The position numbers were made by a program, and so were the translations under genes. From Macrostomum lignano (taxonomy: Eukaryota), in assembly GCA_002269645.1 (NCBI GenBank), contig NIVC01004179.1, forward strand, positions 1 through 56,461: a stretch of DNA of 56,461 bases, read 5' to 3'. The notes under the pieces were generated by a model. The model had not been told where the DNA came from and did not search any database. It saw only the letters and a program-made list of their open reading frames with translations. Shown piece by piece: positions 3,665-49,533 of the stretch. How positions within the stretch are numbered: the first letter of the stretch is position 1; each line of letters opens with the position of its first letter.

Positions 3665-4847
<1,183 letters not shown>

Positions 4848-13510: not shown

Positions 13511-13785
<275 letters not shown>

Positions 13786-15527: not shown

Positions 15528-15967
15528 TATTGTTCTGGCGAAAGCGGTGAGAGGCTGAGAAGAGAGTCCGCCTTGCCTAGCCTGGTCAGCGGTCGTGCAG
15601 AGTCTTCATGTGGATTCGATGGATCTTCGATTCGATCGATTAAATCTTGAGGTTCGGCCAGGCCACGTGAGCAGGACAGCAGGGCTGCTGTGATGCTGTT
15701 TATTTAATATACTAACCAAACTTTCTAACTGAGTGAGAGCAACGCGAATGCGAGCTTATTCTATAATTAACTCGATTCATTTATTTTTAAGTCTGTGGTC
15801 AAACAGACTTCGGTGGCCATCAAAACACATTATAGACTCACTTTCCCGCCCTCTGTCAGTCTATTAATATCGAGAAACCCAGCTTAAGTATCCTAGTTTT
15901 CAGAGTGTACTCATATATATCTGTAATCACCAACCAAGCGAAAGAGTTTGCTTGAATTTTGTCTTCA

Positions 15968-20328: not shown

Positions 20329-23300
20329 TCATTCACGCCTCTCCTCGCGCTTCCGGCGTTCCAGTTCCGCCCAGGCAGCGGCGATGCGCGCTGGGTGAAC
20401 AATTGGCTGCTGCCGCTGTTCGTCGTCCTGATTGATCAGGATCCCCATCAGTTCGTCCGAGTCTCGGAAAAACACTGCCTTCCGTTGCGCGATCCCTGGT
20501 GGAGCTAATGTAATGGGGTAACATTGAGTTTCGATGGGAATACACTTTCTGTTGACCCATCCTGCTTCAAGTTAATGCAAGTTTTTAATTATTAAACTAT
20601 TATTAGAAAAAATATTTCTGCAAAGTTTCTTGGACAAAAACGGAAGAATTTCTCACCATTGTTCATGCTCATAAAAAGAGCAAACTTTGCCACCCAGTAC
20701 TCCAGTGATGCAAGTCTCAATCTATCTTTCATTGGAAGCTGTTGAGCTTCAGTTGGCTGCTTCATCAGTAAGAGAACAATAGGATCCACCCAAAAGATGA
20801 TGGTCTCAATACAGTCTTCCATTTGCACTGAAATTTTCATTTTTAAGTTCCATTTTAACCATCAGACTAAGGTTTTTGTGAAACTCATGCAAACATCCAT
20901 TGACGAGAGACTTACCGCTCTCTCCTTCCTCGCTACCGGCGATGTAGTCGAAGTGCACGGACAGGTACTCATCACGCGGTGCTTGCTCACCTTCCGGCTC
21001 GTCCACGGCATATCGTTTCCGCTTCACTTTGGCGCAGTCTTCACACGGCAAAAGTGGCAGCTCCTGAGATGCTGTGGCAGCCGGATGCTGCGCTGGCTCT
21101 TCTTGTGCGGCCGCCTCCGCCAGCTCGTGAGGGTCTCGGGCGTCAAAGACTTGCCTCATTGCTGCAGGTAGTCCTCCGAGCCCCTCCAGACTCATGGAGC
21201 GCGACAGCCCATACTGGCTGACACTGAGTCCAGACGGGCCAACGCCAAACGCCCAACAGCGAGCTCTACGGGCTGTCGCCTTGGCCTCGAAACTTGCCAC
21301 GGCAGATGGAGAGAAGCTGCCGAGCCCGGCGTCAGTGAAGACAAGCACGTGCCGCTGGCCCGAAGGGTCTCGCAGCAGCAGCTGCAGCAGAGCCGTTAGC
21401 GCAGGCCCATCCGCACTTGCCGCCTGATTCGGATCAGGGGCCTCGCAGTTTGTCACCGAGCCAAGCAGTCGCGCCTTGTCTGCTGGGCTCCAGCCGACGC
21501 CAGCCGTCTTTACGACACTTACTGACTGCGAGAACGTCACGCAGCATGTGGAGACATGCTGGTGGTCCAGAGCCTCTGCTAGCGATACCAGGCTGTGTAG
21601 CAGCATTGGACGCGACGATACAGTGCTAGATGTGAGGGAGACAGCTATGCCTACAGCAATCCTGCGCTCTGTGACTCTGTGCCTTTGTAGCCAGATTTTG
21701 TTGCTAGTGCCATTTGTCATGAACCAGTTCATCAGGCCCCTGATGCTCAGCTTCTTGCCTCTGTTTGCCAGATGGTATCGCATCCGCGAGTGCTGGTTGG
21801 AAACTTGAATACTGCTAATAATCCGGTTGGTGCATGGATCCACTTTCGCCGCTAATTTCTTCCACATTTCATCCGCTGCATGGATTCCGGTGACATCGCT
21901 GAGTTCAGTTAGGTATCGCCGCATTTCGGGCATACTCAGGTTCGCTACTTCACCGGACAGATTTTCGTATTCGTGATATTGCGTCGTTATCTGTTCTTTG
22001 TTTAGCCCAAGGTCGTAGCCTTTATTTTCGCACTCGAGCCACTCTTCCAAAACAACCTGCCGGGGCTCGGGCACGAACTGACCGCATGGGTCTGGCTGGC
22101 TTTGCTCTACTTGGGCATTAGCAGCATTGGTAATAAAGGAAAGTTCTTCAGTCTCGGGGGCAGCAACGAAAGGGTTTTCTGGTCCGCTCCTTTCAATTCT
22201 TCCGTATTTCAGACACCAGTCCTCTTCAATCCACAAGGCGGAGTAAATTTCACCCGAAAACTGTTGCAGAGAATCCTGGAACAGCTGGGAGCCAAAGCCT
22301 CTGTGCTGATCCGTGATTAAAATCACCCACTGGCAGTCCAATATTTTCGAATCAGTTGCTAGGAGTTCGTCTGAATGACAATGCAGTTTGTGAAACACCT
22401 TGCGACAGGTGTGCGGCATCCAGGGGGTGTTAAAGTCTTTGATCGTTGCCGGTACGTTTGCCAGGGACATGAAGCCTTCGTTGCTGATTTGAACGCTTTT
22501 GTCCCCAGTGAGAACGATTTGAACTTTGCAGTTGTGCATTTCGGAATGTCTTACAACTCTGAACACAGCACGAGTGAGTTCATTTTCTTTTCGGCCATTG
22601 TTTTGCTTTTTCCACAGGGAACATTTTGTATCGATTAAAATGGTACCCCTCGTTTCCTTTTTAAGATTTGCATCTTTATGAACTCTTGTTTCCTTACTAA
22701 CGGTGCTGAAGGAAGTCAAATGCTGGACTTGAAACCAATTCGAGGGATCCGCTGTGAAGATAGAAGATTCCTGAGGTGGACGCTGGGCTGGTCTTCTGTA
22801 AGAGCGTCGCGAGTGAATTGGAACGTGTGGGTGAGAGATCTCCACAAAAGTACCTGCTGTACTGGCTTCGTTATCTGAGTCGTCTATTCCAGCACTGAAC
22901 TCTTGCATCCCAACCTCCGGCTCCGCGTCAACGTTCGATCGCGGACTAAACTTCATAACCCGACCGGTTGCTATTTCTGTCGATATATCTCCGCCAACAG
23001 CACCTTCCACTATGCTGGCATCTGACAGATGACCAAGGTGGCCGCTTAATGGATCTGCTATCAGCTGCATCGCTTTCTTCAAAATTGGTTGCTGTCGTAG
23101 AGGCAGCACTGGGTCCTTCTGCAGCTGATGCTGGGTTTCCTTCTTTTTCTATCTTTTGTGCATGCTCTGACATGAAAGTAGAATCTGGCTTGCCCTCAGC
23201 CGTTTCTTCCGGGAACGAATCAGTCGGTATTGTCGCTTCTAGAGCTGCACCAATAGCTTCTGAATTGGCTGTTTCTTCCTGTGCAGAGGCTCCTTTACTC

Positions 23301-26300
23301 GCTTCTGTTGGTTTTGTTTCTTCAGTTGATTCTTCATCAGGTTCTGTCACAGCTTCAGATTCTTCTGCACTCGGAGGTTTCATTTCGCTTTGATCTGTTT
23401 CCCTGCTTTCTTTTCTTTTTTCATCATTGATATCGCTCGTTTGGTTTGTATCACTCGGTGACTTATTTTCGGTATTCTGACCAGCTTGCTTTTCTTTTTC
23501 TATCGGTTCCGAATCGTTTGGTGCGAAATTTCCGTCTTCAGTCTGTAGCTGGTCAGTTTCTGATTCTTCTTGCGAATCTTTTTCGGATTCCACATCGCGA
23601 GAGGTTTCGTTCTTGTTCGTTTTCTCAGAATACGACCCCACTTCTCCTTTCTGTTCTGTTTGCTCGGAACGGGATTCTGCTGCCCCGGCTTCTTCTACTG
23701 GCTGACTCTGTTCGTCACTAGTTTCCAATGGATCACGATTTTGACTGGATTCAACAGATGAAGGGTCACTGTCCTTATGCTCTAAGAGCTCCTCCGCAGA
23801 AGACTCATCCTTGGGTGCCGTCCCGCCAGACTCGCTTCTTTCAGTCCCCGAGCCCGAAGGATCCGCAGACTCTGTCTGGCCAGACCCGCTCTCATTGGTT
23901 CCTGAGCCGGAAGGATCTGTAGACTCTGTCTGTCCAGACCCGCTCTCATTGGTTCCCGAGCCCAGAGGATCTGCAGACTCTGTCTGGCCAGACCCGCTCT
24001 CATTGGTTCCTGAGCCGGAAGGATCTGTAGACTCTGTCTGTCCAGACCCGCTCTTATTGGTTCCCGAGCCCAGAGGATCTGCAGACTCTGTCTGGCCAGA
24101 CCCATAGCCACCAGTCGAGGAGTCTTTTGCCTCCGACTGGCCCATGATTTGCTCGTCGGTCCCCATTGAAGGCGGAGGACTTTCAGTCAGACCGCTCTTC
24201 TCTGCATCAGCAATGGCCTCCTTGGCATTCTGAACTTTGTCCATCCACTTTTTGATTTCTTCTCCTCGCGGTCCAGCCAGGTCACTTTCAGTGGGCTGAG
24301 GATCTGAGCCTCCGCCTTCATCCAGCGAAAATCTATCAGCGTAGCTGTTAGCGATCGCCGACTTTAGCTCCTTTCTTAAATCCTCTTCCTTCGTAGTGGA
24401 GCTGAGAGCAAATCTGAATGCGCCGCTTGCATCTTTGTTGTTGATATTTGCACTATAGGACACAACTGTAGCTGCTTCTGTCCCATCCTCTTTTCCTCCA
24501 GAAATCACCAGTTTTTTCATCGGATTTTCTCACGACTGTCCAGCTCGGTCTCGTTCTCGATTTCCTTCTCGTAGGCATCAATGCCGCAAATTGCCGACTG
24601 AACAAAATCCACCCCTTTTATAATCGCGTGTGTTGCGGCACGAGCAAGCTGCAGAAGTACCTGGCAAAATTGGTAAAAAAGCCACTTGATTCCCGAGTTT
24701 GATTCGACCTTTTCCCTCATATTCCTGATGCTGTCATCCAGCTTTTGCTCCAATTTCTTGAGAAGTTTTCGAACGCTACTGATTATTTCTTTGATTAATT
24801 TCTTTATACTGAACGTGCTGTTCAGTCGGATGTCCCAGTCAAGAAATCTCCGCTGGTTCTCTCGTTCACCAAAGTTTAGCATTACTTCGACGGAAATAAT
24901 TTTGAAGAAAGTGACCTTAAACCGCGCGTAGAAGCACTTTTTGGCGGTGTCTGTCTCTATCTTGGCAGCTACTTCGATAATAAAAAATATGCTCACTTTG
25001 ACGTCCATCAGGAATTTTAGTCCTGTTGCTTTGCTCACAATCAAGTGCAGCTTTGGCCCCGCCTTGCCGTCGGTGCTGCTCACCTCAAGCAGGTCAAGCA
25101 GCTTTAAGGGCTCTACGAGCTCACCTCCGAACTCAATCTTCTTATCTACGCCATGAAAGGTAAAGCCTCCCCATAGGTTAGCGTTCACTCCGAGCCAGTT
25201 GATGGCCGCATCGAATTTGACGCACGGTCCAATCTCATATCTTTCCGTTAAGCCTTCCGGGTTGCCTCCGCCTACGTCTTCCGGTGTTCTGACAGCAGCT
25301 TTTTCAGTCATTTGCAGCTGACAGACGGGAAATTTTATTGACTCCATATTTTCATCGACGGCAAGATAGAGAAAAAACAAATGGTTGAATCCCGGCAGCA
25401 AGAAGTCAACGGTGTTCGTCAAGACTTCATCAACGCCAAGAAGCTTGAAAAGATTGGAAAACCGCAGGGTCTTCTTCTCGTCCTTTTGAAATCGGAAGTA
25501 AGCCCCTACAGGAACGACACGAGTAGGTTTAACCAAATCTTTTTTTCTTGTCATGAATCTAATGCGAAACTCAATGTCGCTCTCGAACAACTTCATGGCA
25601 GCTGCTACTTCAAAGCTTAATGCGTCTGACGGAACGGAAATGGAGAGCTGCATCGAAGCGGAGATCAGTGTTAAAAACTTTAGACCAAAGGGCGTTGGCC
25701 AGGCCAAGTCATTTTCACCGGTTATTTTCAAAGTACCTGAAATTTCTCGCTTTTTGCCACTGCTTTCGATGCTAAGCCTGCCTGAAAACTCAGCTTTGTG
25801 TTTGGCGTTTCCTAAGAATTCGGTGGGAAGATTTATATTCATCTTGGCGTCCAAGAAAAGCTTGATTATTCCTTGAGTCTTCTTTAATAACTTGCCATCT
25901 GCATCAGTCTGCTTTGATGCCTCTTCAGCTGCTTTAATGTGCACGAGTCCCAAGGAGAAGCAGAGCGACACGCAACCAAACAGTTCCACCGAGCCGCACT
26001 CGATGTCCAAACTAAAGCCGCTGCTCACAACGCTAAGACAGCCAGAAAAAGTTTTTCCCGTCAAGCTTAGAAAGTCGTACAGCCAATTCTGTGACATGGT
26101 CGCCTTGAATGACAAGACTGCATATGGTGTTTGTTTAGTTTTCTTCACGCATTCAGTCACGAAAGTTGAATCGTAGTTCATTATTTGCTTCATTTTATCA
26201 GATGCCTCGCTCAGCCTTTCACTGCAAATCTGTTCATTCGCTTTTTTAGAGCGCAGAAGCAGCACGAGCTGTAAGTTGTTGAACACTGGGATAAGCTCGA

Positions 26301-29300: not shown

Positions 29301-32300
29301 TCAACCTCGGAGTGAATGTCAGAAGAAGCTTTTGCTGTTAACTTTAGTTTCCATTTTGATATGTCAATGCGAATTTCCACTCCGCTGATTGGCACATTCG
29401 GGAACGGCTGCTGCACCTCCAAGTTCATGTCCTTCATTAGCTTGAGCAAGAGGCTTCCTCCATCATCTTTCGCCTGACTGGAAGAACAAAGCGTTAGTTG
29501 CAGCTGCTTGGACTTACCGGCCCCTGTTTCTTGTGCTCGTGTTATTTTTAAATCAAACTCGATGCCTAAAAGCGACAGCAGATCCATCTTTCCTTTTATG
29601 CGCACGACCATGTCCGACGGCTCCTTGCCCTCGATGACCAGCTGGGCCTTGTAAAACTGCATACTCGCTGTGTATTGATTCTGCATCTCGAAGTTGGAGA
29701 TTTGCGCTTCCATGCTGACTTGGCCTGATGAGTCAACCCGAAAGCTCTCCACACGATTGATCTGAGACTTTTCTGACAAGCCTGCCACCTCCTCGTCGGA
29801 GGCTTTGAAGATTTGCTTGATAAACATCCGAAGATTAACGTTTTTAGTTTCCGCTATCTTCGATTGAAACTGAAGTTCGGCGATAATATCCGATGAAACT
29901 CTCGCGAGCTTGATGCCGAACATGCTCAAAACTCCCTTCACCTTGCACTTCCAATGCCCACTCGACTCGTGAAGATGCAGCTCTACTTCCCCTATGCTGA
30001 AAGGAAAATTTCGATTAGGTAGTTCGAGCGCTCGGTTTTCTGGCGCACTTATTATGACTCGCGCATCAGACTGCTGCTCTTTGATTTCCATGCTTTGTAC
30101 CGATAAAGTCAAGACCTGCTTAGCAGAAAACCAACTTATGAAGGCCAGCGACTCAGGGACCTCTTCCAAGCAAAAAGAGATTATGCTAATTATCTTTGTG
30201 CTGCACTCAGCCTCAAAAGGGTCGATTTTTAGCAGCGTTTGCGACATGTCGATTGTTCCTTTAAAAGTACTTTTCTTTTTTGCTTCCTTAACCTGCATCT
30301 TGCCCGTTAGAAAAACAGTTTTCGTGTGTTGAATTTCCAGTTGAACGTCTTCGAAACTGAACAACTTGAAAGCCGGCCATCCATAATTGATTTTTTCATC
30401 GAAAGTCAGCTTAAAGAAGTTCGAGTCTTCAACCGCAGCAATCATAATTCTGTTGCATATTTCTTTTGCTCTTTCGTTCCAATATGGAATTTTGGGGGGC
30501 AGAAAATTTCTGAAAATAAAAACATCGCTCGGTTTCAAGAGTTTGATTTGAAAGAAATCATATCCCGAGGAGTTGGACTGAAGGCTGAGGTCGACCTCAT
30601 TTCCTTTTCTTGTATCTCCTGAGCTAAGCACAGCTTTTAGTTTGGCAGAGAAAACTCGCCTCTCCATATCAATAGAGAGTTTTCCGTGCAGATCCGACAT
30701 CTTTACTTGGATTCCAAGAAACCGATGGCAGTCAGCTGACTCTACAGCAAAACTGATGTTTGCGAAGTCTTTGAGCCGCGGAGTAACAGTTTGTACCGCT
30801 GAGCTACCAATTGAAACTCATTGGTTTTGCTGCTTCCAATTTTGAATCTGGTATTGTGATAACACTCGCTTATTGCTCTAGTTAAATCCAATGGAGAGGT
30901 TGCTACTTCTGTTTGCTCTTTTCCATTGCTAGAAAGATGAACTGGAATGTTTCCCTCGGCAAAGAGACCAATTCTAGCCTTGAATTCCCACATCGGCTTT
31001 CCTTTCTTTACTGTCATACTGAAGTTGCTGTCCGCGAAGTAAACATTTGCACTTTCACCGCTACCGTCTTTAAGCTGGTACTCTATGAGCTCGGGATCCG
31101 AGATAGCAGTAGTTCTGCAGAGGAACTGGTTGAACTTCAATGATTTCACTACACTTGGCCCATCGAAATGTCTCAAAAATTTTGTAGGAACAGCATTCTC
31201 CAAGCTAACACTTCCTTGTTCCAAATGAATATTAACAACAATATTAGACCCACCGAATGAGCAGCAGAATTCCCAACTGAAATTAAGTGCTTCCTTTTCA
31301 TTACTGGTAAGGTCACCGACTACTTTCCACAGGAAGTCTCCAGCCTTATTGTTGCAAAGCAAGTGCCGACACTTCAGTTCACTCTCGAATGGCAAAAGTA
31401 TGTTGGTAATAACAGGATGAAAGTGTTCGGAGTGGGACAGCTTCACTTTTGCATGAGCCTCTGGATCCCTCTGCAGTCGGCTGATGGCACAGCCCATGCT
31501 GCTGGTTACGCTCTGGATTTCATCACCTACAAATTGGACAAGAGCTCTCTCTGCAGACTTTGACTTGCATTTCATTAAGACGATAATATCCATTAGCTTT
31601 CTGTCATGAATTGCCTCAACTTTTTGAACGGATTTTAAATTGAATCTGGGCGAGAGAATTCGTCCAGACATGTAGTACTCCTCTTTGTACTTCAACGACT
31701 TCGACATCATTTCGCCCACCTGACATCTCAGCGTCTCATCAAAAATGTCTTCCATGAGACTCGATGCATCAAGCAGCATTCCATTTTCAATAAAAAATAA
31801 AATGTGTCTCAGATCTCTTGCGGTCACTTGCTCCCTTTTTGCCTTTTCTGACGTTTTAAAATCGTTGATGAGACGTCGAACGATGGAAGCAATTTCGTTG
31901 TTGCATAGAGTTCCATCTCTTAGCGGCGCGAACAGGTCAGGAAAGCAGTCCGTTTGCGGATCCAACTTGGGACAGAAAATCTCAATGCAGCGGTTGCGGA
32001 AAGATTCAGACAGCTGAAAGCTGCTACTTCTACCGATTGTTGCTGTGCAGATGAGAGCAAACCCAGGTTTCGGATCGATTCCGCCCTTCGGTCCGTCAGT
32101 GAGAGCCACTTCATGGACGTACAATCGCTGGCCCGACTCGCCAATGGAATTGAGCCTCTCGATCACCTCTGGTCGCGCGTGGTCAACATTGTCCAGCAGG
32201 ATCCAGTTACCATTCTTCATCGACTTTACTAGAGGCCCGTCAACAAACTGAAAGCTGTTTTTGGAGCCACTGCTGACCGGGGAGAAGCCGCCAATGAGGT

Positions 32301-35300
32301 CGCAGACGTCAGTATCAGCATGAACCGCAACAGTGACCAGCTGCTTGCTGCACCGCCGAGCCAGCTCTGCAACTGCGCTGCTCTTTCCGGAAACTGGAGG
32401 TCCTAGTAGAAGTAAGATTTTACCACTTCCAATCGATTGTTGCAGGAGACGCACGAGTCTGTCGGATGCGTCGCAAGGATTCAGCCTCTGACTTGAGTGT
32501 AAGAAGTCCCCGCGGCTGGTAAAAGCTCTCTTAGCTGTTTCTTCTGGAGACTCGCAAACAGCTAGTTTGCTTATCAGCTCCTGGGTTTCGGAACTACTGG
32601 AAGAACTACATTCGCAGTATACAATACCAAGAGCTTCTTTCACAGTGTTATGCGCGTTCAACAAGCCGACAACCTTTTCTACATCTCTAAGATTGAATTT
32701 ACGATCAAAGTGGCCAGACGGGCATGCGTGATCTTTACAGCTAGCAACCATTTGCCAGTGAAATGAAGCCACTGCTTCAGTATTCGGACCAAATTCATTT
32801 CGAAACTTTTCGATTATTTCTTGCATCTCTTTCTCTCCGATGACGTCCACGCTTACCTCCGTTAGCAGCTTTGACAGAGCTGGCGGCAGCTCCTGGCGTC
32901 CTCCGCCAGAACTTGCCGGGTTCATCGCGCACACAAACTGCAGCTGCAATGCGACATGTTATGGAGAACAGCGTTTTACAGATTACTTTTGACTAAACTT
33001 TCTGTATACAACTAGGAAACCCTAATGATAAATAACTCAATTTTCTATAATTTCAACAGCGTTGTGTCAATTGCTTCTTACCTTTTTCAGGGAATATTCC
33101 TTAGAGTTTACAACCATCTTTATGCCTTTAGGATGCTTCATGATGCCTAAAATAATTTCAGAGAACACTGTCAATCAAGAAAATAACATAAAACGATAAA
33201 ATGTACTTCTATTAAAAGCGATTTGTTCTGCTTACCAATAATTGTGCTCAGAACATTGCTGGGAGCCAAATTAATTTCGTCGAATAAAATAACGGCTCCT
33301 TGATATTCATCGGAACTTTTCGGTTTTCTGCCCGCCATTCGAGCGGAGTCGGCCACTGCTGCCTGCTCCAGAATTGCACCCTCTCTGAATTGAAATGTCA
33401 TTTTGGTAGCCTTAGTTCCCGAATTCGAGTGCGCCGTTGGAACAAATGACCCAAATAGGTCTTCTTGAGAAAGATCACTAGAGCAGGAAATTCTGATGAA
33501 CTTCTTTTTAAGAACCGATTCTGCAAATATCCTCGTGATTTGGGTCTTGCCAACTCCCGGAGGTCCAACGAGGTTGACCACTGATTCAGTGTAATGAGCA
33601 ATTAGCAAGTGGCTAAGTACTTCTTTTGCCCGCCGGGTTACTGTCAGATTCTGACTCACTCTTTGAAACTCCTGTTCTGAGAATAGCGATGCTTCAGACA
33701 GAATTTCGTTTGGACTGTCACTTTGTGGAAATTCCTGCTTCAGGGCGAGACTAAAAGGTGATTTGCAACATTTTGGAGGAATTTTTGCAAATGATGCCAT
33801 GTTGACTAGGCTCTTCACACTCAGAATTCCATTTGAGAGTTTCAAGGCTTCGCTAAGGCCACGGTCGATGTCTTCCGACAAAGAGGAAGGGATTGACGAT
33901 TCTCTGCTCAGGATATCCCGAAAGAAGACTTCAGCCTCGCTGCCTCTGCTCACATCTGTCAGCTGAGGATCTCGCACATGAATCACTGTGTACCGCGACC
34001 TCATTGAGGGCGAGATGTCTTTGTCCGTTGGCAAAGAGATTGTGGCTATTAGCCTAAAGTTCACGCTCAAAGCGATCGGAGCATCAAACTGATGAGGATG
34101 AGTAAAGCTGGGCTCTAACTCGGTCACGCTGTTGAGACACTCAATAACTGCCTGATCAGCAAGGTTAATGTCTCTCAGGAAGGCAATTCCACCGAAGCGA
34201 ATATTTCTCATGATTCCCCTCTCACAGAAAGGAAAAATCTGAGATCCCGATGAGCAAAGGGACAAGTTTTGCAATGTTTCATGCGCGAACGCTGCATCAG
34301 AGAGGAGGCATTGCTGAGGACAGCCGATAAAATCAGCTGAGTGCTGCTTCAGTATGTCGCAAAACTGACTTGACTTGCAGCTCTTCCATCTCTCTACTGC
34401 AGGTGATTGCTTGAATGGGGCTGGTAGTTCGTTTGTAAGTCGATTTCTAAGCTTGGAGCAAGTGCTTTCGAAGTACGATGTGCATTTACTGAAGCTCTTT
34501 GCCTTGCTCGGATACCGCGTCATCAGCAACTGTGCAGCTGGATTGGCGCAAGTCTCTTCGAAGGACTCCGCTGAGTGCGGCTCGATCCCGCCAAACAGAT
34601 CTCGGGTCTCGGTTAGATCCGACATGTACAAAGTAGTCAGTCTGCAAAGCTCAGGAGCACCAAAGTCTACGATTTGAGTCAGGTGGCGCACCATCGTTGC
34701 TTTAAAATTCGTCCGGCCTTCGAGCACCACGGGCTCAGCGAAGTGGAGCGCCAGTGCAAGCTTGCAAAGGCTCAGCTGTTCGCTCCTTATCATGGGCTGC
34801 GGAAGGCTTTTCTGCAGCGCTTTCAGCTTCACAGACACAGTTGCCGACACAGCTACATCTCGAAAGAAAATTTCAAAGAGCCAATCGTTTTCGACGCATT
34901 CAATTTTGCAGTCCAAAACTGCTGCTTGAGGTGGAAATAGGTCCATCAAAACGGCAACGTGTAGCTTCACCTTTTCCAGCCAATTTTCTGCGCTCAAATC
35001 TTCCGTAATTGTGAGTCGCCTCACAAGCTTTAAAAGAGTTCTCAAGGTTGTTAAGTTCGATTGGTTGTGGTGACCCTGCAAATATTTAACAAGCTCTTGG
35101 ATTCGAGTTCTCATCTCCGAGCTTGATAGCTCGCTACTAAAGAGATTTTTTGCCACATTTTTCATGAATGACCTTGCTCCGTGGTATAGTCCTGATAGAC
35201 TTTTTATTTCGCTGCTGGGTTTGTTCTGCTTCATCGAGTCTGCAAAACATGCTACTTTTCCGTAGAGGATGTCGACGATCTCATCGCGAGTGTAATCTGG

Positions 35301-38300
35301 CACCGAGTACTTCACCAGTCTGGCCAGCACAGGTTCTGGAAGGCACTGTCTTCCAACATATTCTGTCGGATTTTGCGTACCCACAAGGCAAACTCCGGGT
35401 GAACATCAAGCCATTGTTGTCGAATCGAGCAACGAAATTTGCTGCCACCGCTCAGAAGAGGCGTCAGATAGCTCGTGACTTCGGGCGATGCCAAATTAAG
35501 CTCGTCCGCAATAAATATGCTTCCTTCTCTCATGGCCTTGCTCAGCGGCCCTTCTTTGAACTTGGCCTTCGTTCCATCAGGCAGATAGCAGCCCATTAGG
35601 TCAGTAACAACTGTGTCCTTGTTGAACAGAAATATAACTGGCCTGGCCGCATAGCCTAAATGATTGCTCACTAGCTTTACAAGCGATGTTTTGCCTACTC
35701 CGGAGTGCCCTTCCAGCAGCACGGGAATCTTCATTCTGAGGAGAACCATTAACAGGCCAGCCAGTTTCTGTCGAGACTCCCCAAGAGTGTACACTGGACT
35801 GTCAAGAATAACATTCTGTGTCCATTCGTGTTTGCATTCTACGGACGACTCAAGCACTAATTCTGCAATGCTTTCAACTACTTGAAACCAGTCATAAAGA
35901 GAATAATTTTTGCCATCTAAAGCGATAGGCTTCTTGGCCAAGTAATTGGTTCCGTTTACGAATTGGGCTATCTTCCCGATCGAGGCGTAAATCAGTTTAC
36001 ATTTTATCGTCGAATCTTGTTCGCGCATCGGCAAGTGACGGAACATCAAGTCCAGAATTCTTCGAGCATTGTTTCTGCTCATTCGATTCGCGATAAAGGA
36101 TTCGACATCCGAGCTCAATATGTTTTCCGGCACGTAAAATATGACGAAACGACTGAGGAACGACTGGGGCAACTCGAATAGTTCGTTCTGACGCTGCTGA
36201 CTGAATGTGGCGAGCACAAAGAAGCTTGGATCAACCGGCACCATCTTGCCGTCAATTAGATAGCGGCGCTCTGGCCCTGTCTCCAATAGTGCGTTCAGAG
36301 ACTCCAAGACTGCCTTTTCTACCAAGTTAATCGACCTGAGTACCAGGCATTTTCCCTCTTTGATAGCTCGAGCTACTGGTCCGTCAACCCATTGGAATAC
36401 GGCTCCTGAATCCTAAAATGCAACATCAAAAATGATGTCAAAGATAAAAAGATAAGGTACTCGTACATGAGTTTTCGAGAGCTACGGTAAATAAATAAGT
36501 ACAAAAGCTCACCTGGGGCTGAAACTGTCCCACAGATCATCAGTTGATGTTTCAGAATGGCAATAGTATTCCTCAAGTTCGATGTTTCTCTTCTTTGCCC
36601 AAATCCAAATGGCGGTGAATTTTCCCGAGAAGCTTTCCCCGACCAGCATGCCGGGCCTCTTCGTGTCATGACAGAGATCAAGATACTCCATAGTGTCGCT
36701 GTAGGTGCTGAGTACTGCCACTTCGCCAATTCTCAGGTCGGATAGATTTTGGGACACCTGCTTGGGTCCGAATTCCATTTGCAAACTTTCTTGAACAAGC
36801 GTATGAGTTTCTTCAGCTTGCGAAGCAGTATTTTCGCTGTGCCGAGAAAAAAGACACATGAGCCGGTTTGTCACTTCCTCGGGCTTAGAATTGATAATAA
36901 TGTCTTGAGCATGCAGCAAATCTCGAAGAGTAACATGCAGTTTATCTTTGAACTTCCTGTAGATTGAAATCAGTTTATCGGCCATTTGAGTATTGCCGTC
37001 TGAGCATCTGCCTTTTAATATTTTTTCGACATCATCATCAGGCAGCTTTGAAAAAGTTAAGCGGACAAAGTGGCTCATAAGAGACTTTGAGAAACGAAGA
37101 CTGTCGAATCCAAAAACAACGACATTCGAATTTTGACAAAGGAAAAGGCGAAAGTTCGGGTGGCGTCGGTAGCACAGACATCCATTCTCCGCATCTGACT
37201 GGCCGGCGATGAGGCTGTCCCGAATTTGCAGCATCCCTGTGTCCAGAACGTCCTCCAAAACCCGCAAAACAGCGTCACTCGCCAGATTGGCCTCGTCCAA
37301 CAGAAGCCAATAGCCGTCCCTGACTGCTCGGGTAAAGATGCCTGGCTCGAACCGGAACTGCGATCCGGATCCCGAACCAGCGAATCGAACACTCCCGAGT
37401 AGGTCTGCCGCGCTGGTGTGTGGTGACAGGGTAAATCGCAGCAGCGGGGCGCCGGAGATGGCAGCGCAATACCGAACTGAGAACGTCTTTCCTGTGGCTG
37501 GTTCGCCTTCAATAAAGACGGGCATGTTGGAGTTGATCAGCAGTAATAGGCGCTCAACATTTTCTTTGGTCCGGTCAGTAAATACGAAGTTCATTGTTTC
37601 GTGGCTCTCAACCGCTTGTTTCATGCTTTCTGAAATTTCCGATGGAACACTTTCTAGACTTTGTCTTGGCAGTCTTATTCGCAAGTGATCGTCGAAGAGC
37701 TCCTCAACTTCTAGCTCTCTATTTTCGTGGATACTCAGAAAGAGCTCCTGTACAAAATAATTTTCTTGAGGTAGCTTTCCTTGGAGTTTCAAATGCTTCG
37801 TAAGCTTCTCGTGGCTGAACTCAGACATCAGAGTATCCATGTACTTTTTGTCACTCCTTTTCCCTGCTTTGATGAATGGCAGAAATCTGTTTTTGTCTTT
37901 ATTTGCTTTAGTTTGTTGTTGCTTTTTCGCAGTCGGCTGTGTAATACCAACAGGTGTGGGTAGCGGTCGACTAGACCTCACGCTCCACCTATTGCTTTTG
38001 CTTTTCTTAGCCACCTGCTGCTCCAGAACAGTCACCTTTTGATCCACTGAGCCTATGATAATGTCAAGACATCGCGCGTCCAACACCTCATCTGGCAAAG
38101 CGACCTCATCGGAATCTTGCTTTAACTTCCGGATCTGAATCACTGACTCTTCGGATGGGTTCACCAAATAGTAGGCGTTCTCGAGAGGATCCGTGGCCAG
38201 CCTTATTGGAGCATCGAGTGCTGCTTCACCGGCCTGAGTGACGTCCCAGTCAACAGACAGAGCAATCACATCGGTCGCGGTTAAGCTGTCGACAATACAG

Positions 38301-39094
38301 CCCTCGGCTTTGAAAATGGCATCGATTCGGTCACTCTGGTGACCAAGCCGGGCGGTGCATAACTTCCAAACCCGCTGATGCAGAACGACCATGCGAAGGA
38401 GAAGCTCATCATTCAAGTTAACAAAGACAGCGCCTTTAACATCCGATCGACAATAGATGGTTGGAGTTTGTTCTTTCAGGGGTACTAGATAGAATTGCAT
38501 TCGGTTCGAACTGTCCTTAGCAAATATTGTGGCGAAATCGGCATTCTCTGAAACCTGATAGTGAAGCACCGATCTCAGGCTCAACTTGTGCTCTAATCGA
38601 AGGTCATGCTGGTCGAAACCAGCTTGATTGTTCTTGTAAACCCTGATTCCAGCCCAGTGGTGAATCAGAGTGCTTTCGGTTACTACAGCAAAAACATCGG
38701 TGCTAAGCCACACTAGCTTTAGCGCTTTCTCAGCCTGCAACGAGTGCACAGCAACGGGAGACCATGGTGAGCTCGAGGCAAAGTCGAATACTAGTACTCG
38801 ATCGGCAGAGTTTCTTCGAACCACAACCGCAAGCCTCGAAGTCGTATCGTTCGGTACGGTGTGAACAATGGCGTCATTGCCACACTCGGGTATGACGAAT
38901 CGGCGAAGCGTGTAAGATTCCGGGTCAAAGACAGTCGTGCAGTTCACTTCAGAGCCCTTCAGTCCCAGAATATCCGGTAAACTGTACGAACTGTGGATAA
39001 CGGCCGAAGTCTTCGTGAAGAACACATCGTGCAGTTTATAGTTCTTGTCAGGACCGACCACGTCAAGTCTGAAGGGGAAGTTATCCCCTTCCAT
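20329..39094 (-). CDS. Giant divergent midasin/Rea1-like AAA+ protein (~6,000 aa): propeller-like N-terminus, 6 AAA modules, beta-rich linker, acidic region, two vWA-like domains, C-terminal extension
   Basis: Exons are 39094-36513, 36412-33236, 33146-33082, 32943-20916, 20827-20657 and 20561-20329, with GT-AG introns of 100, 89, 138, 88 and 95 bp. Phases are compatible, the first junction only after the ~36534 correction. Walker A motifs: GEPATGKT, GESFSGKF, GHSGVGKT, GRTNFKA, GPPGVGKT, GPPVSGKS. The C-terminal RGKKLSIRGLMNWFMTNGTSNKIWLQRHR matches the midasin GKRLNIRKVIPYIAS..KDKIWLRRT pre-MIDAS motif. About 9 single-base frameshifts are needed to join the ORFs. Confidence 0.85.
21140..22655 (-). 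other. Two vWA-like domains (~22655-22200 and ~21670-21140)
   Basis: First domain: TILIDTKCSL...VQIVLTG...WVILITDQ...EIYSALW. Second domain: VGIAVSLTSS...CCVTFS...VLVFTDAG...CWAFGVG. Confidence 0.65.
23850..24105 (-). repeat. Coding tandem repeat, 54-bp unit (SGSGQTES[AT]DP[LS]GSGTNE), ~5 copies, within the acidic region
   Basis: Direct reading in ORF 22946..24520. Confidence 0.93.
31900..37600 (-). other. Six tandem dynein-related (AAA_5/MoxR-like) modules of the giant protein
   Basis: Each module shows Walker A, a DL(L/F/M/I)GxFxP-type motif, a FxFxxGP-type motif, a Walker B position, the LNxxLE-type helix and HPxFRL-type/sensor-1 motifs. Confidence 0.9.
38070..39094 (-). other. N-terminal domain resembling the clathrin heavy-chain terminal beta-propeller
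   Basis: By-eye colinear matches: FPFRL~LPIRF, AVHSL..KLVWLSTDVFAVVTESTLIHHW~KAHTM..[30 protein letters not shown]~IINYRTDAK, RMQFYLV~AMQLYSV. Confidence 0.55.
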
Positions 39095-39280
39095 GCCTGA
39101 GAGCTGGGGAATAAAAGGAGCATTTTCGGGTTTCGCTTCTTGCTGCGCAATTTACGATCAAAATTCTATCAAATCAGAAATTCAGTCAATGCAGCGAAAC
39201 TGTGGAAATGTTAAGAGCCTTATTATCCGAAACTAGAGCTAGTTAATTAATTGATGGGTAAGCAGCAAGATGACTTCACT

Positions 39281-40140
39281 TCATCCCAGGTCACTGCACC
39301 CCATCCCAGGTCACTGCACCCTATTCCAGATCACTGCACTCCATTCCAGATCACTGCACCCCATCCCAGGTCACTGCACCCCATTCCAGATCACTGCACC
39401 CCATCCCAGGTCACTGCACCCCATCCCAGGTCACTGCACCCCATTCCAGATCACTGCACTCCATTCCAGGTCACTGCACTCCATTCCAGGTCACTGCACC
39501 CCATCCCAGATCACTGCACCCCATTCCAGGTCACTGCACCCCATCCCAGGTCACTGCACCCCATCCCAGGTCACTGCACCCCATCCCAGGTCACTGCACC
39601 CCATCCCAGATCACTGCACCCCATTCCAGGTCACTGCACCCCATCCCAGGTCACTGCACCCCATCCCAGGTCACTACACCCCATCCCAGATCACTGCACC
39701 CCATTCCAGGTCACTGCACCCCATCCCAGGTCACTGCACCCCATCCCAGGTCACTGCACCCCATCCCAGATCACTGCACCCCATTCCAGGTCACTGCACC
39801 CCATTCCAGGTCACTGCACCCCATCCCAGGTCACTGCACCCCATCCTAGGTCACTGCACCCCATCCCAGGTCACTGCACCCCATCCCAGGTCACTGCACC
39901 CCATCCCAGATCACTGCACCCCATTCCAGGTCACTGCACCCCATTCCAGGTCACTGCACCCCATCCCAGATCACTGCACCCCATCCCAGTTCACTGCACC
40001 CCAATCTCATGTCACTGCACCCCATCCCAGGTCATGCACCCCCCAGTCACTGCACCCCTCAGGTCACTGCACCTAATCCGTATCACGTTCATCTGCACCC
40101 ACCTTCCATTCTCCAGTCACTCTCAGGTCACTGCACCTAG
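39281..40140. repeat. 20-bp minisatellite (TCACTGCACCCCATCCCAGG and variants) just upstream of the giant gene
   Basis: About 38 tandem copies, degenerating at the right end. Confidence 0.97.
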
Positions 40141-43100
40141 ACATTTCTACGTATCTACGAGCGTATCTATCCCAATAAGCAAACCCACCTAGATCCATTC
40201 TGCAATCTGCAGTCACACCCATATCGAAAGTGCAACCTGCAGACCACTCAGATCCAAGCTGCAAAAATCTCAAACCAGCTTACCTCGGCCTCGACTTATG
40301 ACCAATCTTAGTTGAAGTCTTGGTTGTGTCAGATAAAAGTACTAAATGAATATACCAGTAAATTTATAGAATTTATTAAAAAGTAGGTAAACTGCGTTTG
40401 AGATTGGCAGACTTAATTTTTGTTTTCTTCTATTTCTAAGTTTCTAATCTATGATAGCTAATTTAGTGCAGTAAAATTCCAGACTTTTGTTAATTAAACA
40501 AATTTATATAGGCTGAAGATGGTACCGTTTACCCAGACAGGGGTAGGGGGGCAGTTACGAGTGCATGAAACGTATTCGCTACTTGTGCATGCTGCAGTCT
40601 TTAATGCACAATAGTCTACAACTGCACTGCTATTGTACGGTGCTTCGAGACGCACAGGTGGTGTGTAATTAATCCCAACCTCTAAAGCTGCCGCTGCCCT
40701 GGAAAGAGAGTCTCACCTTGGACTTTACTTTCGTATTCCACTGCAGTACTATAGAAAGGGAACTTTGCTTGGTTATGTTCAAGGTACCAGCAATGAATTT
40801 TGTCATCATTTGAGGGAACTTCATCTTAGATGCTTAAAAGCGTCGGAAAGGCCGTGGAAAAGCCGTGGGAAATCCACGGAAAAGACTTTCTAGAACTTTC
40901 CCGGGGCAAGAATAATTATCAGGCGTGATGTGATACTTCAATGTTATTTAGATTGAAACACTTTGACTTTAGTTAAAGTATATGGTACAGGACTGGCAAC
41001 TACTGACTTCCTCAGTATATGCAATACAATAAACCAATCCCAGACCTTTCCTCGTATCTATCTATCCCAAATTGCAGACCTACATGCATTTAAGCCGATT
41101 GAACCCATCTTCGCTGCATAAGACCTTGCAAAAATACTAAGAATTTAATTTACTAAGAATTTGTCACTTTCAATATCTTTACAAACTGGAATGAGTGGGC
41201 TCAAAATTCTGGACTAATATGTAAAAATATATTTAATAAGCATTCCATAAGTTTCTTTAATCTCAATGGCTTTTGGCAGAGTGTTATTGTGAATTTTCAC
41301 ACGTATATACAACTATGTGTAGAAAAAAAGCAGAAAAACGCTGGCATTGCTACTTAGTAGGCAGTTGACAATCACAACTGCAGATATTTAAGAGGGAAGA
41401 GGAACATGGTAAACCAGCTTTCAATAGCAGTTTAAGTAAGATTTTATTCAAAACAAACTCGATCAGCTGAAAAAGAAGTAGCCCTTTTAGCAGAAAGTAA
41501 AATATGCTTCTCTAACGTCCATTTCATTGAATGTGGTGTCAAATTTCACTTTGCTTCTTCTGTCATTAACGACAGCTACCGGGTAAAATGCCACTCAAGT
41601 TCCAAAGTGGCTAGGATTGCGTCCAGTGCTTTGCAAGGCATCTCTGTTCCAGAAGCAAACCCGAGCAGCGGTCCCACCGGTGAGTTGGTCGCCTCTGATG
41701 AGTCTCGTGAGTCCTCTACTGCACACGGAGTGAAGTCATGGTCATCGATGGTCCTAAAATTGCAATCCTGTTTAAGTAAATGCGTGCAAACTTTTTTGAA
41801 GCAGGGAAAACTATTGAGAAGTATGAGGGGGAGTTTTTTTCGTATTTTTTCGTTTTCTGTTTTTTCTCGTGTTCTATTTGCGACACCAAATGCAACATAA
41901 ATTGTTTATTCGACTATCGTACATCCAGTCTTTCCCGAGACCAATAAATGGGGAATATTTGATGTATCCATCAATTGTCTCTGGTCTGAAGCGGAACTAG
42001 GACGTTAATTTGCTTTATGTTAAACTTCGGGTATCGTTGTGAACTTGTTCACAACCGGTGCAGATAAATGAAATAAACAATTAAACCATAGACTATACTG
42101 CACCAGTGCTCGCAATCTTTCTAAACTACTATTAACAACTTAAATAAGTAGTAACTGTGCACATAGCCTAAGCTAAGGTTGTAAACTTAAACTTGCATTT
42201 GAGTTGGGCGAAAGAAATTAAATGACAGAGTGATAAGTTGAAACCGGAAACGCGAGGAGACTGGAAAGCCTCATCAGCAAAGAAACCAGGCAGGCATTGT
42301 TAATCAGATATTTTGTGCATTCGAATATTTGCACGTCGCAACTATTCTTCATCTATAGGCCTAATCTTCTTTGCATTAGCGCTAGATGCCTTTCTCCGGT
42401 GCTTTCTGGCCTCGCGCTGCTGGAGCAGGGGAGAAGCGCAGACGGGGGCAAACAGTGCCACAGCGAGAGTCCCTCGCCGAATGGTCCGGAAGAGCGTGGC
42501 ACCTCTTTGATGCCCCCAGAGGTACACAGACATCCCATCGCCATCAATTTTGGTTTGGGAGATTAAAGTCAGATCGGAAGTTGTTTAACCAAGTCGCATT
42601 TCCTTAGGCAAATTTCTTCGCCTACTCAGAATGTTTGCACAGGGCTTGGGGCCTCGCCTCCGTTTCTGGGCTGTCAGTTCAACGCTTAACGCGCTTCCTT
42701 GCCAGTAATTCTGTCCTGAATTGGTCTATCTTTGGAGGTGGTCTTTAACTTTCCAAATGAATAAGCTCATGATCAGTAATCACTATAGTTATAATCAGCA
42801 GCTACCCCCCAAACTCACGCTGTGGGTCCATTGGTGATTAGGGACTGCAATCCCGGGATCCCGAAATCCCGGGACAAATATTTTTATTATTTTTGCAAAA
42901 AGTGTTGTAATATGAACATAATTGGGCTCACAATTAGTATATTGATACTGCGCTAATTTCCGTTAATTGACCCACGTCGCGTGGCGCCTTTTTAAACCCC
43001 GCATCACAGATTTATATTTGAAATTTATTCTAATGTATATTTTGTCTCCATAACTAGAGGGAGATACGTGCTATAAAGTTTTTATTATTGAATGACAATC

Positions 43101-44620: not shown

Positions 44621-46598
44621 CTTAAGAATCTCAATCCAGAGAAGTTTCTCTTCTTGAGACACTCAACTCAAAAATTCGGATTGCTTTGAAAAAATGAAAA
44701 CAAAAAAATCTACCCCTCATAATATGAAACGGCTCTAATGTTGAGTTTGACATACAAATCTGGATTGGCTCATTATCCATAAGAGTTTTCAAACGTGGAT
44801 TTTCAGTAAAAATCGCAACAGCCCAGTCAGCACCTGTTCACCCGCTAAAATTGATATCAGAAAGGTCTATAAGGCAAATCAAGCTTGAAATCTGGACCAT
44901 TAATCAGGATTATATCGACATGGGATAAATATATATGAGAGCTCCATCAGATTTGGTCCCAGTTTGGGAGGCTGGAGAATCTGGGGAGCGGGGATTTAAG
45001 AAAAATGAGCGGGGCCAGTATTTTATAGAAGCTGGCAAAAGAAGACCCCGGGAGCATAGAGGAGAAATCCCATAGCATAATCCCCCCCGCCAAAGCCGAG
45101 TTCAAGTCTTCCACAGTCCGGAGCTGGAGCTGCGCAGCGGAAAAGCGAATTTTTAATGACTTTAATTAGTCTTTAGTCTTCCAGCCCGCTCGGCACAGCG
45201 GCCCGATGAAAGTGAATTATTCAGAGCCTGGAAGATCCCCGTCTCCCTGAAAGACCGAGCTCTCTCTGCCCATCACCCTTCGAATGTTTGCGGTGCCATC
45301 AAACAGGCGGGCCGGAGGCATAACTCACCTGTAATTAACTGATAGGAGGAGGAGAATAGGCCTTCCCACTTTTCATCCCGCCTCGAAAGCTCCATGGGAT
45401 CCGACCCAACCCCCCCCCCAACCGGAGCGGCTGCGGTCTCCCCGGGGAGATTCCGGTTGTAGCTGAGTTATGGCCGCGTTTCCTGACGGCAGCTCGGCCT
45501 TGTCCGGCCATTTCTACTCCAATTCACCTGAGATTGCTCCGGCCGAGGCTGTGAAAGCTAAAGCGGACCAATTTGCCTAATGGCTTATGGAAGCCGAGGC
45601 CATTAGTTATGCAGCCGCGGCACCAGCCGCGGAGCAACAGGGATCGGGCGGGCCGCGGGTGGCGAGTTCCTGCCCTGACAAATCTCTGCACAGTGTGTAG
45701 ATAAAACACACACTTGCTGTATATATCCTTTATAGCTTGTATAGCCCCCCCCCACTTTTAATTCTGAGTAGTGGTGGCCTTTCAGCTAGATCTGGAGCGA
45801 TCGCAATTCACCGCCACTCCCCAATCAAGATCGCACAAAGATTTATTGCTCCGCACAGTCACTCCGCTTCTTTCATGCTCAGATTCAGCTGATCAACCGA
45901 ATTATAACACCTTGCGCCGTCTCTTCTCTTTCAATCTAAAAATAAAAGCAGATTTGTTCAATTCTTCAGACAGAGAGTGTGCAAATATTTATCAACTACA
46001 AGCGTATATTCATAGGTTGGAGATTTCGTTGTGTCAATTTTCTGTCGCGTGGCAGAAGAGCAGTGAGAAAAAAGCAATGAGTTGAGAGGCGCAATCAATT
46101 AGATTGAATTGTCTTCGGGCAAATATATGAGAGCTGCCAATGGGTGTTTGACGATGTTTGACCCGCCTTGGCTCACAGCATGAAATTCAGGCCCCAACAG
46201 TTGGGGTCTCTTTGGTCTCTGTAAAGGAAATATTGATGAGGATTTGGGATTTCTTTGTAGGGGTGTATAGGGAGCGCTCTCGCATTGGCTGGACCGCAGT
46301 CAGACTCCTCCCCCTTAGAGTTTTCCAATTCCAGCTATTCCTCATCTCTGCTCTACCCCTCAGAGCCTGAGCAGCCTCGCATTCTCGCTCCGACACTGGG
46401 GAGAAGCAGAAATTCTTAGGGGGGGGGGAGTTTGAGTCCGCGGGCAGGCCGCGACCAATGGGATCCTGAGCAGGAGCTTTGGGAGGAGCGGAGGCTGGGA
46501 CTCCCATCGGAAATAGCTGCATCACCTGTCGGCTCTCGCATCGAATTTCGACTCGATCGTTCAGGCTCTTCCTTCCTCAACCGCCTCCGGCCTCCAGC

Positions 46599-47821
46599 AT
46601 GACAGCTCCGTACTTTGCCCACTTCGGCCGCAGGCCACCGTGGCTGCAGCAGGGCAGCTTCGGCCGAATTCCGCCTCCGCCGCCTCCGCCGCTGCCGCCG
46701 CCGCCACCGCAGATGTTTCCCAACATCGGTTGCCATCCTTACAATTTCCCACCTGGACTTCATCCGCACGCTTCTGCCGCGCCGTTTCTTGACCCGCTCA
46801 ACATGGTGCACCTGAACTGCTTGATGCAGCAGTCGCTGATGCCGCCGCATCCTCTGCCGTCGCCGCTGCCTCCCCCTCCGCCGCCACCTCCTCTGCAGCG
46901 ACCGCCGCAAGCAACGATGCACGAGTTCTTGAACAGCAAATTGCCTTTGAAGTCACCGCCATCGAATTCGCCGCCGCATCCCCTGCCGCCGCCGCCTCCG
47001 CCACCACCTCCGCCGCCCCCGCCGCCACCGCCACCAAAGTCCCAGGCGGGCCCGAAACGAAAGGCAACTCGTCGAACAGCGGCGCCGAAGGACGGCGACA
47101 ACGACAACAGAAGCCCGGTGAGCGGCACCCTCATTCGCAAGCTGACGGACAAGGACGGTGTCCGTCAATCGGCCGACATCCTCGAGCCGTCAAAGTTCGT
47201 GGCCGTCACGCCGGAGACCAAAGCGCAGCTTGCCAAGATAAAAAATGTGATTGGCGACTTCGACTGCCAGCTGTGCTCGGTGAAGTACCCGGACGCGTTC
47301 CAACTGGCCCAGCACCGCTGCCCGGGCATCGAGCACATCCACTACAAATGCGAGGACTGCGACAAGTCGTTCAACTGCCCGGCCAACCTGGCCAGCCACA
47401 AGCGCTGGCATAAGCCGAAACCGCCGGGCGGCTCGCTGAAGAGATCGAAAGACTCAACGGTTGCAACGGGCAAACCGGCCGAGATCTCAACGCCGCGACA
47501 GTCGAAACCCTATCCGTTCAGAATCGAGGACATTCTGCTTGATTCAGCCAGCTGCAGGCCGGAGGCAAGCGAGGGCGTCAGGACGTTAAGCCGGAAAAGT
47601 TAGAAACGCCGTCAAAAACTGGCGACATCGATGCCAGCGACACCAGCTCCGCCGGTGACAGCTCGATGGATCGCTGCATCTGCGGCTGCCTGCTGACTAA
47701 GCAGGAGCTGGAGGAGCACATGCTGAAGCACCTGATGGAGAAGGCGGCCTCTGTGAAAGCCGAAGCTCTCGAGAGACAGCAGCAGCAGCCGGTGTTCCCG
47801 GAGCCACTGACAGACAATTAA
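46599..47821 (+). CDS. insm: INSM1/Nerfin/EGL-46 family C2H2 zinc-finger transcription factor, single exon (apparent frameshift near 47545-47575)
   Basis: KIKNVIGDFDCQLCSVKYPDAFQLAQHRCPGIEHIHYKCEDCDKSFNCPANLASHKRWHKP is the diagnostic EIN domain. ATG at 46599 is inferred. The as-sequenced stop is at 47603; the -1 frame continues with CICGCLLTKQELEEHMLKH to a stop at 47821. Confidence 0.92.
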
Positions 47822-49230: not shown

Positions 49231-49533
49231 CAAATATCTTCAACACTCCGTTAGCAAAATTTATTCACAGAAACGAGTAGGTTTCTCTGAGACCTTGAAT
49301 TTTGCCAGGACCCATGTGTGATGTGCAGTGGCTCGATTCTGCATCTGGTATGTAGGGGGATAGTTTGCTAAGCTGCAGGTGAAGTTTTCCCACTTGCTGG
49401 TAGACAGACAATTGATTATGCAATCGCCTGTAAAACTGTGGTGAAGCTGTTTGCTATTTACTGATCCAGGCAGGGGCCATGGATTTTGTGGTGGGGGGAC
49501 AAAGCCAAGAATTCAACATGCACATGTACATGA

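Follow-up and report, generated by a model that had tools for sequence, protein, structure and literature searches.

A clathrin-terminal-domain-like, putative β-propeller fused to a midasin-type AAA ring in the flatworm Macrostomum lignano

The window analysed here is contig NIVC01004179.1 of the flatworm Macrostomum lignano over its full 56,461 nt (positions 1-56,461, to which all coordinates refer). Its minus strand carries an AAA gene of ~18 kb, read from 39094 to 20806 in at least eight exons. The encoded protein comprises an N-terminal all-β domain, which is our main subject, followed by a linker, six midasin-type AAA modules, a very long post-ring region, an acidic region and a C-terminal MIDAS/VWA-like domain (Table 1). 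Exon 1 (36509..39094, minus strand), whose translation from 39094 begins MEGDNFPFRLDVV, heads a succession of long minus-strand frames joined by short GT-AG introns; it encodes the N-terminal domain and the linker of ~120 residues and runs into the first AAA_5 module. An initial annotation of this DNA had singled out the segment 38070-39094, corresponding to residues 1-341 of the N-terminal domain, as a propeller like the terminal domain of the clathrin heavy chain, fused to the AAA ring and possibly acting as a recruiting head.

Relatives of the N-terminal domain are very few. A phmmer search with the first 448 residues against 1.84 billion cluster representatives found two proteins, here called P0001 and P0002. 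P0001 (UniRef100_A0A1I8JC40, 'AAA_5 domain-containing protein', Macrostomum lignano) differs from the contig protein by a single substitution, A185S, across the first 854 residues; another UniRef model, P0003, aligns to the contig from 39094 to 33237. P0002 is a protein of 1,932 residues encoded on a 6.6-kb intronless contig of run SRR28338163. Its N-terminal domain is 29% identical to that of the contig protein (E 1.8e-36), with conservation extending to about residue 378, it begins at the equivalent Met, and its transcript has the same module order, N-terminal domain and then AAA. On that transcript contig (L001) coding goes on past the 1,932-residue open reading frame (ORF) in another frame, at 5873-6562, as a called gene of 230 residues, which suggests a frameshift in the P0002 assembly and an orthologue much longer than the called protein. 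A separate homologue search, made both with the N-terminus and with the two-sequence alignment, yielded no protein. Alignment-based scans of metagenome contigs and prokaryotic genomes found no relatives of the N-terminal domain, and therefore no deeper alignment was possible.

The start codon at 39094, which the initial annotation had favoured, is borne out by an in-frame stop codon upstream (Table 1), by the two UniRef models P0001 and P0003, both of which begin at this Met, and by the P0002 transcript, in which the equivalent Met at nt 78 is preceded, 45 nt upstream, by an in-frame TAG at 30-32. A pyrimidine tract followed by AG lies on the minus strand at 39100-39112 (ttttattccccag/ctctcaggcATG), ending 9 nt before the ATG; its sequence resembles that of a 3' splice acceptor, or of a trans-splice acceptor, serving the 5' untranslated region.

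The fusion of the N-terminal domain to the AAA ring is real, because the domain and the first AAA module (AAA1) lie in one uninterrupted exon and the same order is repeated in the orthologue transcript. It is very improbable that the domain is an artefact of the gene model, in which a small independent gene or a pseudogene fragment derived from clathrin sits by chance upstream of the AAA gene and in its frame. Exon 1 offers 861 open codons with neither stop nor intron between domain and AAA1, two independent UniRef models and the intronless P0002 transcript show the continuity from N-terminus to AAA, and the first 854 residues, with their one substitution relative to the other copy, are under evident constraint. 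What speaks for an artefact is that, compared with the UniRef proteins and the orthologue, the contig copy has lost one nucleotide at each of two sites, each deletion shifting the frame of the AAA gene, so that this copy may not be fully functional. One, ctg[g]tggg, lies near 36532 (~36530-36535, minus strand), seven codons before the exon 1 donor, and the other, gcct[t]tgtggg, near 35385 (~35383-35387, minus strand). These may be indels of a long-read assembly or may mark a decaying paralogous copy, but neither touches the N-terminal domain.

How good is the resemblance to clathrin, whose terminal domain is regarded as a hallmark of the clathrin heavy chain? The initial annotation had paired six peptides of the contig protein with clathrin strings. 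All of the quoted peptides are present in the contig protein (aa 1-10, 62-78, 100-105, 115-147, 176-190 and 198-204), and the clathrin strings are correct, since the human terminal domain used here matches PDB entry 1c9i_A exactly; our yeast copy is identical to 9s6d_A/9ex5_A. The pairs are collinear, and five of the six were recovered by a profile-profile alignment by dynamic programming (DP) that was made without reference to them, the sixth, RMQFYLV~AMQLYSV, being shifted there by 5 residues. In this comparison a two-sequence flatworm profile, extending to residue 380, was aligned with affine gaps to a profile of human and yeast clathrin and scored against column shuffles. The result was a global z of 6.3-6.5 and a local z of 7.9, with none of 400 shuffles at the observed score, and it was stable at three other gap settings. 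Human clathrin alone gave z 6.0 (global) and 6.4 (local) and yeast clathrin alone 3.0 and 3.4, the human protein being the closer to the flatworm domain, which hints at a metazoan origin of the latter. Five other propellers (GNB1, WDR5, RACK1, Sec13 and RCC1, with unverified sequences) and reversed clathrin gave z values of only -1.1 to 1.7. With decoys consisting of 65 pieces of real proteins, each of 359 residues, from the rest of the gene and from proteins P0002-P0006, human clathrin scored z 5.5 (global) and 5.3 (local), and no decoy reached its score. Degenerate end-to-end overlaps were all that two further procedures yielded, the global mode of hhalign and semi-global alignment in Biopython with end gaps left free, and both were discarded. 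Under targeted and controlled comparison, the similarity is thus collinear and specific to clathrin.

The similarity is concentrated in the first 150 residues. In the DP alignment all four sequences are matched from Met1 onwards, with FPFRL and FPFEL in the flatworm pair set against LPIRF and LPIEF in clathrin, a common φ-P-φ-[RE]-φ pattern at residues 5-10 (FPF[RE]L~LPI[RE]F). This is followed by DP..RR..(A)DS, the F91 strand (VLVFDF~LQIFNI), the motif W[IL]S..VA.VT...H and H145, all in the same order as in clathrin. When the alignment was divided into segments, aa 1-110 against clathrin 1-97 gave z 3.4 and aa 111-150 against clathrin 98-131 a local z of 8.0, with mismatched segment pairs at -0.3 to 1.4. 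Over the whole alignment, 50/338 positions of the contig protein and 61/326 of P0002 are identical to human clathrin (~15-19%), and over the first 150 residues 23/128 and 33/126, respectively (18-26%). P0002 is the more clathrin-like of the two. BLASTP aligns its residues 49-144 to clathrin 49-129 with 27% identity in 96 columns (E 0.003 for a single pair), a stretch that includes RRxxxADS and WISxNxVAxVTxN, whereas for the contig protein it finds only WLSTDVFAVVTESTLIHHWA against 19 clathrin letters (E 0.028 for a single comparison). Single-sequence Smith-Waterman alignment with shuffles similarly gave z 4.2 for P0002 and a weak 2.4 for the contig protein.

Structure prediction bears on the fold itself. 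AlphaFold2 produced all-β models both from the single sequence, with a predicted local distance difference test score (pLDDT) of 41 and a predicted template modelling score (pTM) of 0.37, and from the two-sequence alignment (pLDDT 48.6, pTM 0.45), where pLDDT rises to 70-81 for aa 70-150. The two-sequence model has ~30 strands between aa 9 and 376, a number that fits seven four-stranded blades, followed by helices at 416-437, outside which confidence in the linker is low. In a Foldseek search of the PDB with this model, clathrin terminal domains, human/bovine and yeast, fill the first 17 places and 27 of the first 33, at E 1.3e-7 to 1.5e-5, the best non-clathrin match having E 2e-6. With the single-sequence model, clathrin holds eight of the nine top places. 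The initial annotation had named generic WD40 or other propellers as best matches, or the lack of a propeller fold, as outcomes that would speak against it; what was found instead is that the models are all-β and that clathrin domains rank first.

We consider it very probable that the N-terminal domain is a β-propeller. It could instead be some other β-rich or partly disordered extension, with the propeller an artefact of low-confidence modelling and the clathrin resemblance due to chance; in the better model 273 of the 448 residues have pLDDT below 50, including all after aa 250, and to this can be added the lack of any match by database-wide methods and the post hoc nature of our statistics. 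Against chance stand the ~378 residues conserved between two species, a strand count consistent with seven blades of four strands, two models with the same top family, and shuffles and decoys that never attain the observed score. We regard chance resemblance as improbable.

For the clathrin relationship itself, the outcome of the checks proposed in the initial annotation is mixed. The predicted all-β fold, and the placing of clathrin above generic WD40 propellers by Foldseek, stood; a match to the Pfam clathrin propeller family did not appear. Several observations weigh against a relationship to clathrin. In hmmscan searches with aa 1-448 and with the orthologue, Pfam returned neither Clathrin_propel (PF01394) nor WD40 nor any other family at E<=10, and phmmer and two profile searches of the PDB (full and truncated) returned no clathrin at E<=10; a match there to Cas7, at E 0.43, was rejected as noise. 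A comparison of the two-sequence profile with clathrin by hhalign gave a probability of 7% (P 0.004-0.005, aa 50-145 against 50-129). Yeast clathrin, with z 2.2 and 2.4 against the decoys, is marginal overall (z 2.2-3.4), and for aa 151-380 the sequence signal is not significant (z <=2.1). Both structural models are poor, and they superpose on clathrin with template modelling (TM) scores of 0.29-0.39 and root-mean-square deviations of 12-14 Å; the Foldseek E-values therefore rest on local similarity in structural alphabet and amino acids (3Di+AA). That similarity overlaps in part with the information used in the sequence tests, and AlphaFold2 may itself be leaning to clathrin from weak sequence cues. 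The targeted statistics are single-target and post hoc, with P roughly 1e-4 to 5e-3, which agrees with the failure of HMMER to report a match database-wide, and these single-comparison values are optimistic because the hypothesis came from the data. The domain is represented by just two independent sequences among the 1.84 billion cluster representatives, and it is because only these two exist that standard hidden Markov model searches miss the fold.

The most serious competing explanation is that the domain is a β-propeller but no relative of clathrin. It would then be a convergent or unrelated irregular propeller, or one of protocoatomer type such as that of RMC1/Bulli, with clathrin coming first only because no other irregular non-WD propeller is so well represented in the PDB. 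The low TM scores are in keeping with this, as is the blindness of standard sequence methods to clathrin. The Foldseek rankings offer further candidates. For the single-sequence model, Bulli (8c7g_A) is third, with an E-value nearly equal to those of clathrin, and 2gop, DPP-IV/FAP and PON1 are close behind; for the two-sequence model, RMC1/Bulli, WDR91, DDB1 and IFT-A appear from E 8e-6. The N-terminal propeller of RMC1/Bulli (C18orf8), from the Mon1-Ccz1 Rab7 guanine nucleotide exchange factor complex (8C7G, 9L0D, 8JBE), is among the best non-clathrin structural matches, being the first of these for the single-sequence model; for the two-sequence model it is second (ranks 29-30), behind an axonemal chain from Chlamydomonas. 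However, it ranks below clathrin in this structural comparison, with TM 0.25-0.27. The sequence similarity, moreover, is clathrin-specific and collinear from Met1, is absent in the five other propellers and in reversed clathrin, and includes the 96-column match of P0002 with its two motifs, and in the better model human and yeast clathrin stand above every non-clathrin chain. A propeller of other origin thus seems to us unlikely, though it is to be taken more seriously than chance. We favour, with a probability of about 0.6, the reading that the N-terminal domain is a strongly diverged homologue of the clathrin terminal domain fused to a midasin-like ring.

The clathrin terminal domain recognises peptides in grooves, the textbook mode of adaptor recruitment. 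Would the flatworm domain bind peptides in the same way? Mutations that disrupt the four peptide sites of clathrin affect Q89/F91 (clathrin box), Q152/I154 (W box), W164/L183/Q192 (arrestin box) and F9/E11 (Royle box) (PMC5182127). Equivalences taken from the DP alignment, which are uncertain after residue 150, show that five of these residues are not conserved, a further point against kinship with clathrin: in the contig protein and P0002, respectively, Q89 is replaced by L and F, Q152 by S and S, Q192 by S and S, F9 by L and L, and E11 by V and V. The hydrophobic character of the groove lining is kept at the positions of F91 (F and Y), W164 (F and Y) and L183 (L and L). Because the three groove glutamines are replaced, any ligand is likely to be something other than a canonical clathrin-box, W-box or arrestin-box peptide, and we give little credence to adaptor-type peptide binding as in clathrin. 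We infer that the propeller may serve as a platform for docking or recruitment without recognising canonical motifs of clathrin-box type.

The head is therefore best described as clathrin-terminal-domain-like and probably homologous, and not as a member of the family, since the Pfam match, database-wide significance, the CHCR context and the site residues all fail. Like the clathrin terminal domain (1BPO, 1C9I, 9EX5; PF01394), it is N-terminal from Met1, of similar length, predicted to be all-β with a strand count suited to seven blades, and matched to clathrin first in both of its models. It differs in its low identity, in the loss of sequence signal past residue 150 and in its context. In clathrin the head leads to an α-zigzag linker and CHCR leg, whereas in the flatworm protein it leads to a K/Q-rich linker and an AAA ring, and there is no Clathrin/CHCR Pfam match anywhere in the gene.

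The ring is of midasin type. Pfam finds AAA_5 in each of the first four exons, four of the six P-loops are canonical and two degenerate (Table 1), and the top PDB relatives are midasin/Rea1 (6or5, 6i26, 5jcs), at E 7e-84 to 1.6e-80 over five or six matched stretches, with NorQ/CbbQ/MoxR-type ATPases ranking next. The protein shares with midasin/Rea1/MDN1 (6OR5, 6I26, 5JCS; 6QT8) the six tandem AAA_5-type modules in one chain, midasin being its closest relative, and also the succession, after the ring, of a very long tail, an acidic stretch and a MIDAS-like C-terminal domain. In other respects it departs from midasin. The nearest non-flatworm proteins in the large library are midasin-like with only 25-28% identity, over about a quarter of the query; the N-terminal domain is apparently a β-propeller and not that of midasin; and where midasin has its helical linker the flatworm protein has an orphan tail with no detectable similarity to it. 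We considered the gene as the flatworm MDN1 orthologue and rejected this, because ring identity is low and the tail unrelated; the protein is a divergent midasin-like paralogue.

The orphan tail gave no Pfam match at E<=10 over its ~1,870 residues, and its 1,244-residue exon no PDB match at E<=1. The acidic region that follows is the counterpart of the D/E-rich stretch of midasin. Searched against the PDB at E<=5, the C-terminal exon matched a single entry, 6qt8, the midasin MIDAS domain (E 0.61), to which GKKLSIRGLMNWF..NKIWLQR..RRIAVGIAVSLTSS aligns as GKRLNIKKIIPYI..DKIWMRR..RAYQILLCVDDSSS, and no VWA match was found in Pfam at the C-terminus. The midasin-type element GK+L.I+..I....KIW.+R is kept, but IAVSLTSS stands in place of midasin CVDDSSS, such that the metal-coordinating Asp of the DxSxS motif is lost.

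Combinations of MoxR-class AAA, vWA and β-propeller modules are known from bacterial MoxR-vWA-β-propeller ternary systems, in which the three occur as individual proteins of prokaryotic conflict systems, and some vWA domains of the propeller-containing systems also lack the MIDAS aspartates (Kaur et al. 2020, PMC7159879). The flatworm modules, in contrast, lie in one eukaryotic polypeptide with six AAA modules, and the Pfam family of these bacterial ATPases, bpMoxR (PF20030), is matched only at E 0.026, with no evidence of direct descent. Our literature search found no paper that connects midasin with either the clathrin terminal domain or M. lignano, and the fusion of a clathrin-like head to an AAA ring has not been described.

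How might such a protein work? We propose that the first ~380 residues would fold into a closed, seven-bladed β-propeller, a diverged relative of the clathrin heavy-chain terminal domain, which the ~120-residue linker joins to six AAA modules arranged as a ring in a single chain. On the model of midasin and dynein, this ring could convert ATP hydrolysis into movement of the long tail, the MIDAS-like end of which could grip a substrate, as in midasin. The propeller would then be a static docking platform, fixing the machine to a partner or recruiting an adaptor peptide. As to origin, a flatworm lineage may have captured the head of an animal clathrin heavy chain and set it N-terminally on a midasin-derived six-AAA mechanoenzyme; we hold this scenario unlikely. 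Were it true, no clathrin terminal domain would have been known outside clathrin before this one, and the motor might dock through peptide binding in the propeller groove, possibly on coat or adaptor-like partners, while the tail pulls the substrate.

If the clathrin terminal domain has been reused as the head of a midasin-type machine, the module would be shown to be portable. The protein would also represent a new class of giant mechanoenzyme in which targeting, by the propeller, and pulling, by the ring and MIDAS-like tail, could both be dissected. The case shows, too, that a recognisable fold can lie concealed in the 450-residue 'orphan' N-terminus of a protein annotated as 'AAA_5 domain-containing protein'. 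Its practical significance is limited, the gene being confined to Macrostomum and one other sampled organism.

Table 1. Features of the AAA gene and its upstream flank on contig NIVC01004179.1
Feature	Position	Strand	Description
Minisatellite	39282..40073		20 bp, CATCCCAGGTCACTGCACCC; 40 copies, 92% matches; 190 nt upstream of the ATG, outside the protein
Start codon ATG	39092..39094	-	first ATG after in-frame TAA at 39154-39152
N-terminal all-β domain (aa 1-378)	37961..39094	-	putative 7-bladed propeller; from strands, Foldseek and conservation with P0002
aa 1-150, clathrin-specific signal	38645..39094	-	segment z, best pLDDT, BLASTP/hhalign coverage of aa 49-145
Linker (aa 379-498)	37601..37960	-	K/Q-rich low complexity, then predicted helices leading to AAA1
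Six midasin-type AAA modules	31987..37600	-	Pfam AAA_5, P-loop scan, midasin as best PDB relatives
P-loop 1	37484-37507	-	GEPATGKT; motif scan; canonical
P-loop 2	36617-36640	-	GESFSGKF; motif scan; degenerate
Intron 1	36413..36512	-	100 nt, GT-AG, cag/gtgagc...ttttag/gattcagg; P0001 reads straight across
P-loop 3	35687-35710	-	GHSGVGKT; motif scan; canonical
P-loop 4	34695-34718	-	GRTNFKAT; motif scan; degenerate
P-loop 5	33543-33566	-	GPPGVGKT; motif scan; canonical
P-loop 6	32380-32403	-	GPPVSGKS; motif scan; canonical
Post-ring region, ~1,870 aa	24520..30700	-	family unrecognised; L/K/S/E/V/F/I-rich
Acidic S/E/G/T-rich region	22949..24520	-	S 16%, E 14.5%, D 7%
Tandem repeat, 54/108 nt	23825-24103	- (coding)	SGSGQTES(A/T)DP(L/S)GSGTNE units within the acidic region
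C-terminal MIDAS/VWA-like domain and stop codon	20806..21876	-	degenerate DxSxS motif

Upstream of the gene, the plus-strand ORFs at 39251-40192 were considered as genes and rejected as read-through of the 20-bp minisatellite, which is responsible both for these spurious frames and for the strong GC skew of the region. Further minisatellite arrays, with periods of 5/10/15, 8, 9, 19 and 21 nt, are found at 1795-2600, 3538-4900, 13433-14014, 16354-16916 and 49438-51300, and the long 'ORFs' at 1872-2888, 4328-4909, 49534-50640 and 50662-51312 are read-through of such arrays; the last two give weak matches to DUF6944. An inverted repeat of 229 nt (14325-14553 and 15301-15529), 95% complementary and with its arms 747 nt apart, may represent the termini of a small transposable element. 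Finally, there are plus-strand ORFs at 46479-47603 and 18965-19675, one with a single C2H2 zinc finger (E 5e-6) and another with sub-threshold matches to LED-repeat and left-handed β-helix families, which may be neighbouring genes or fragments of genes.

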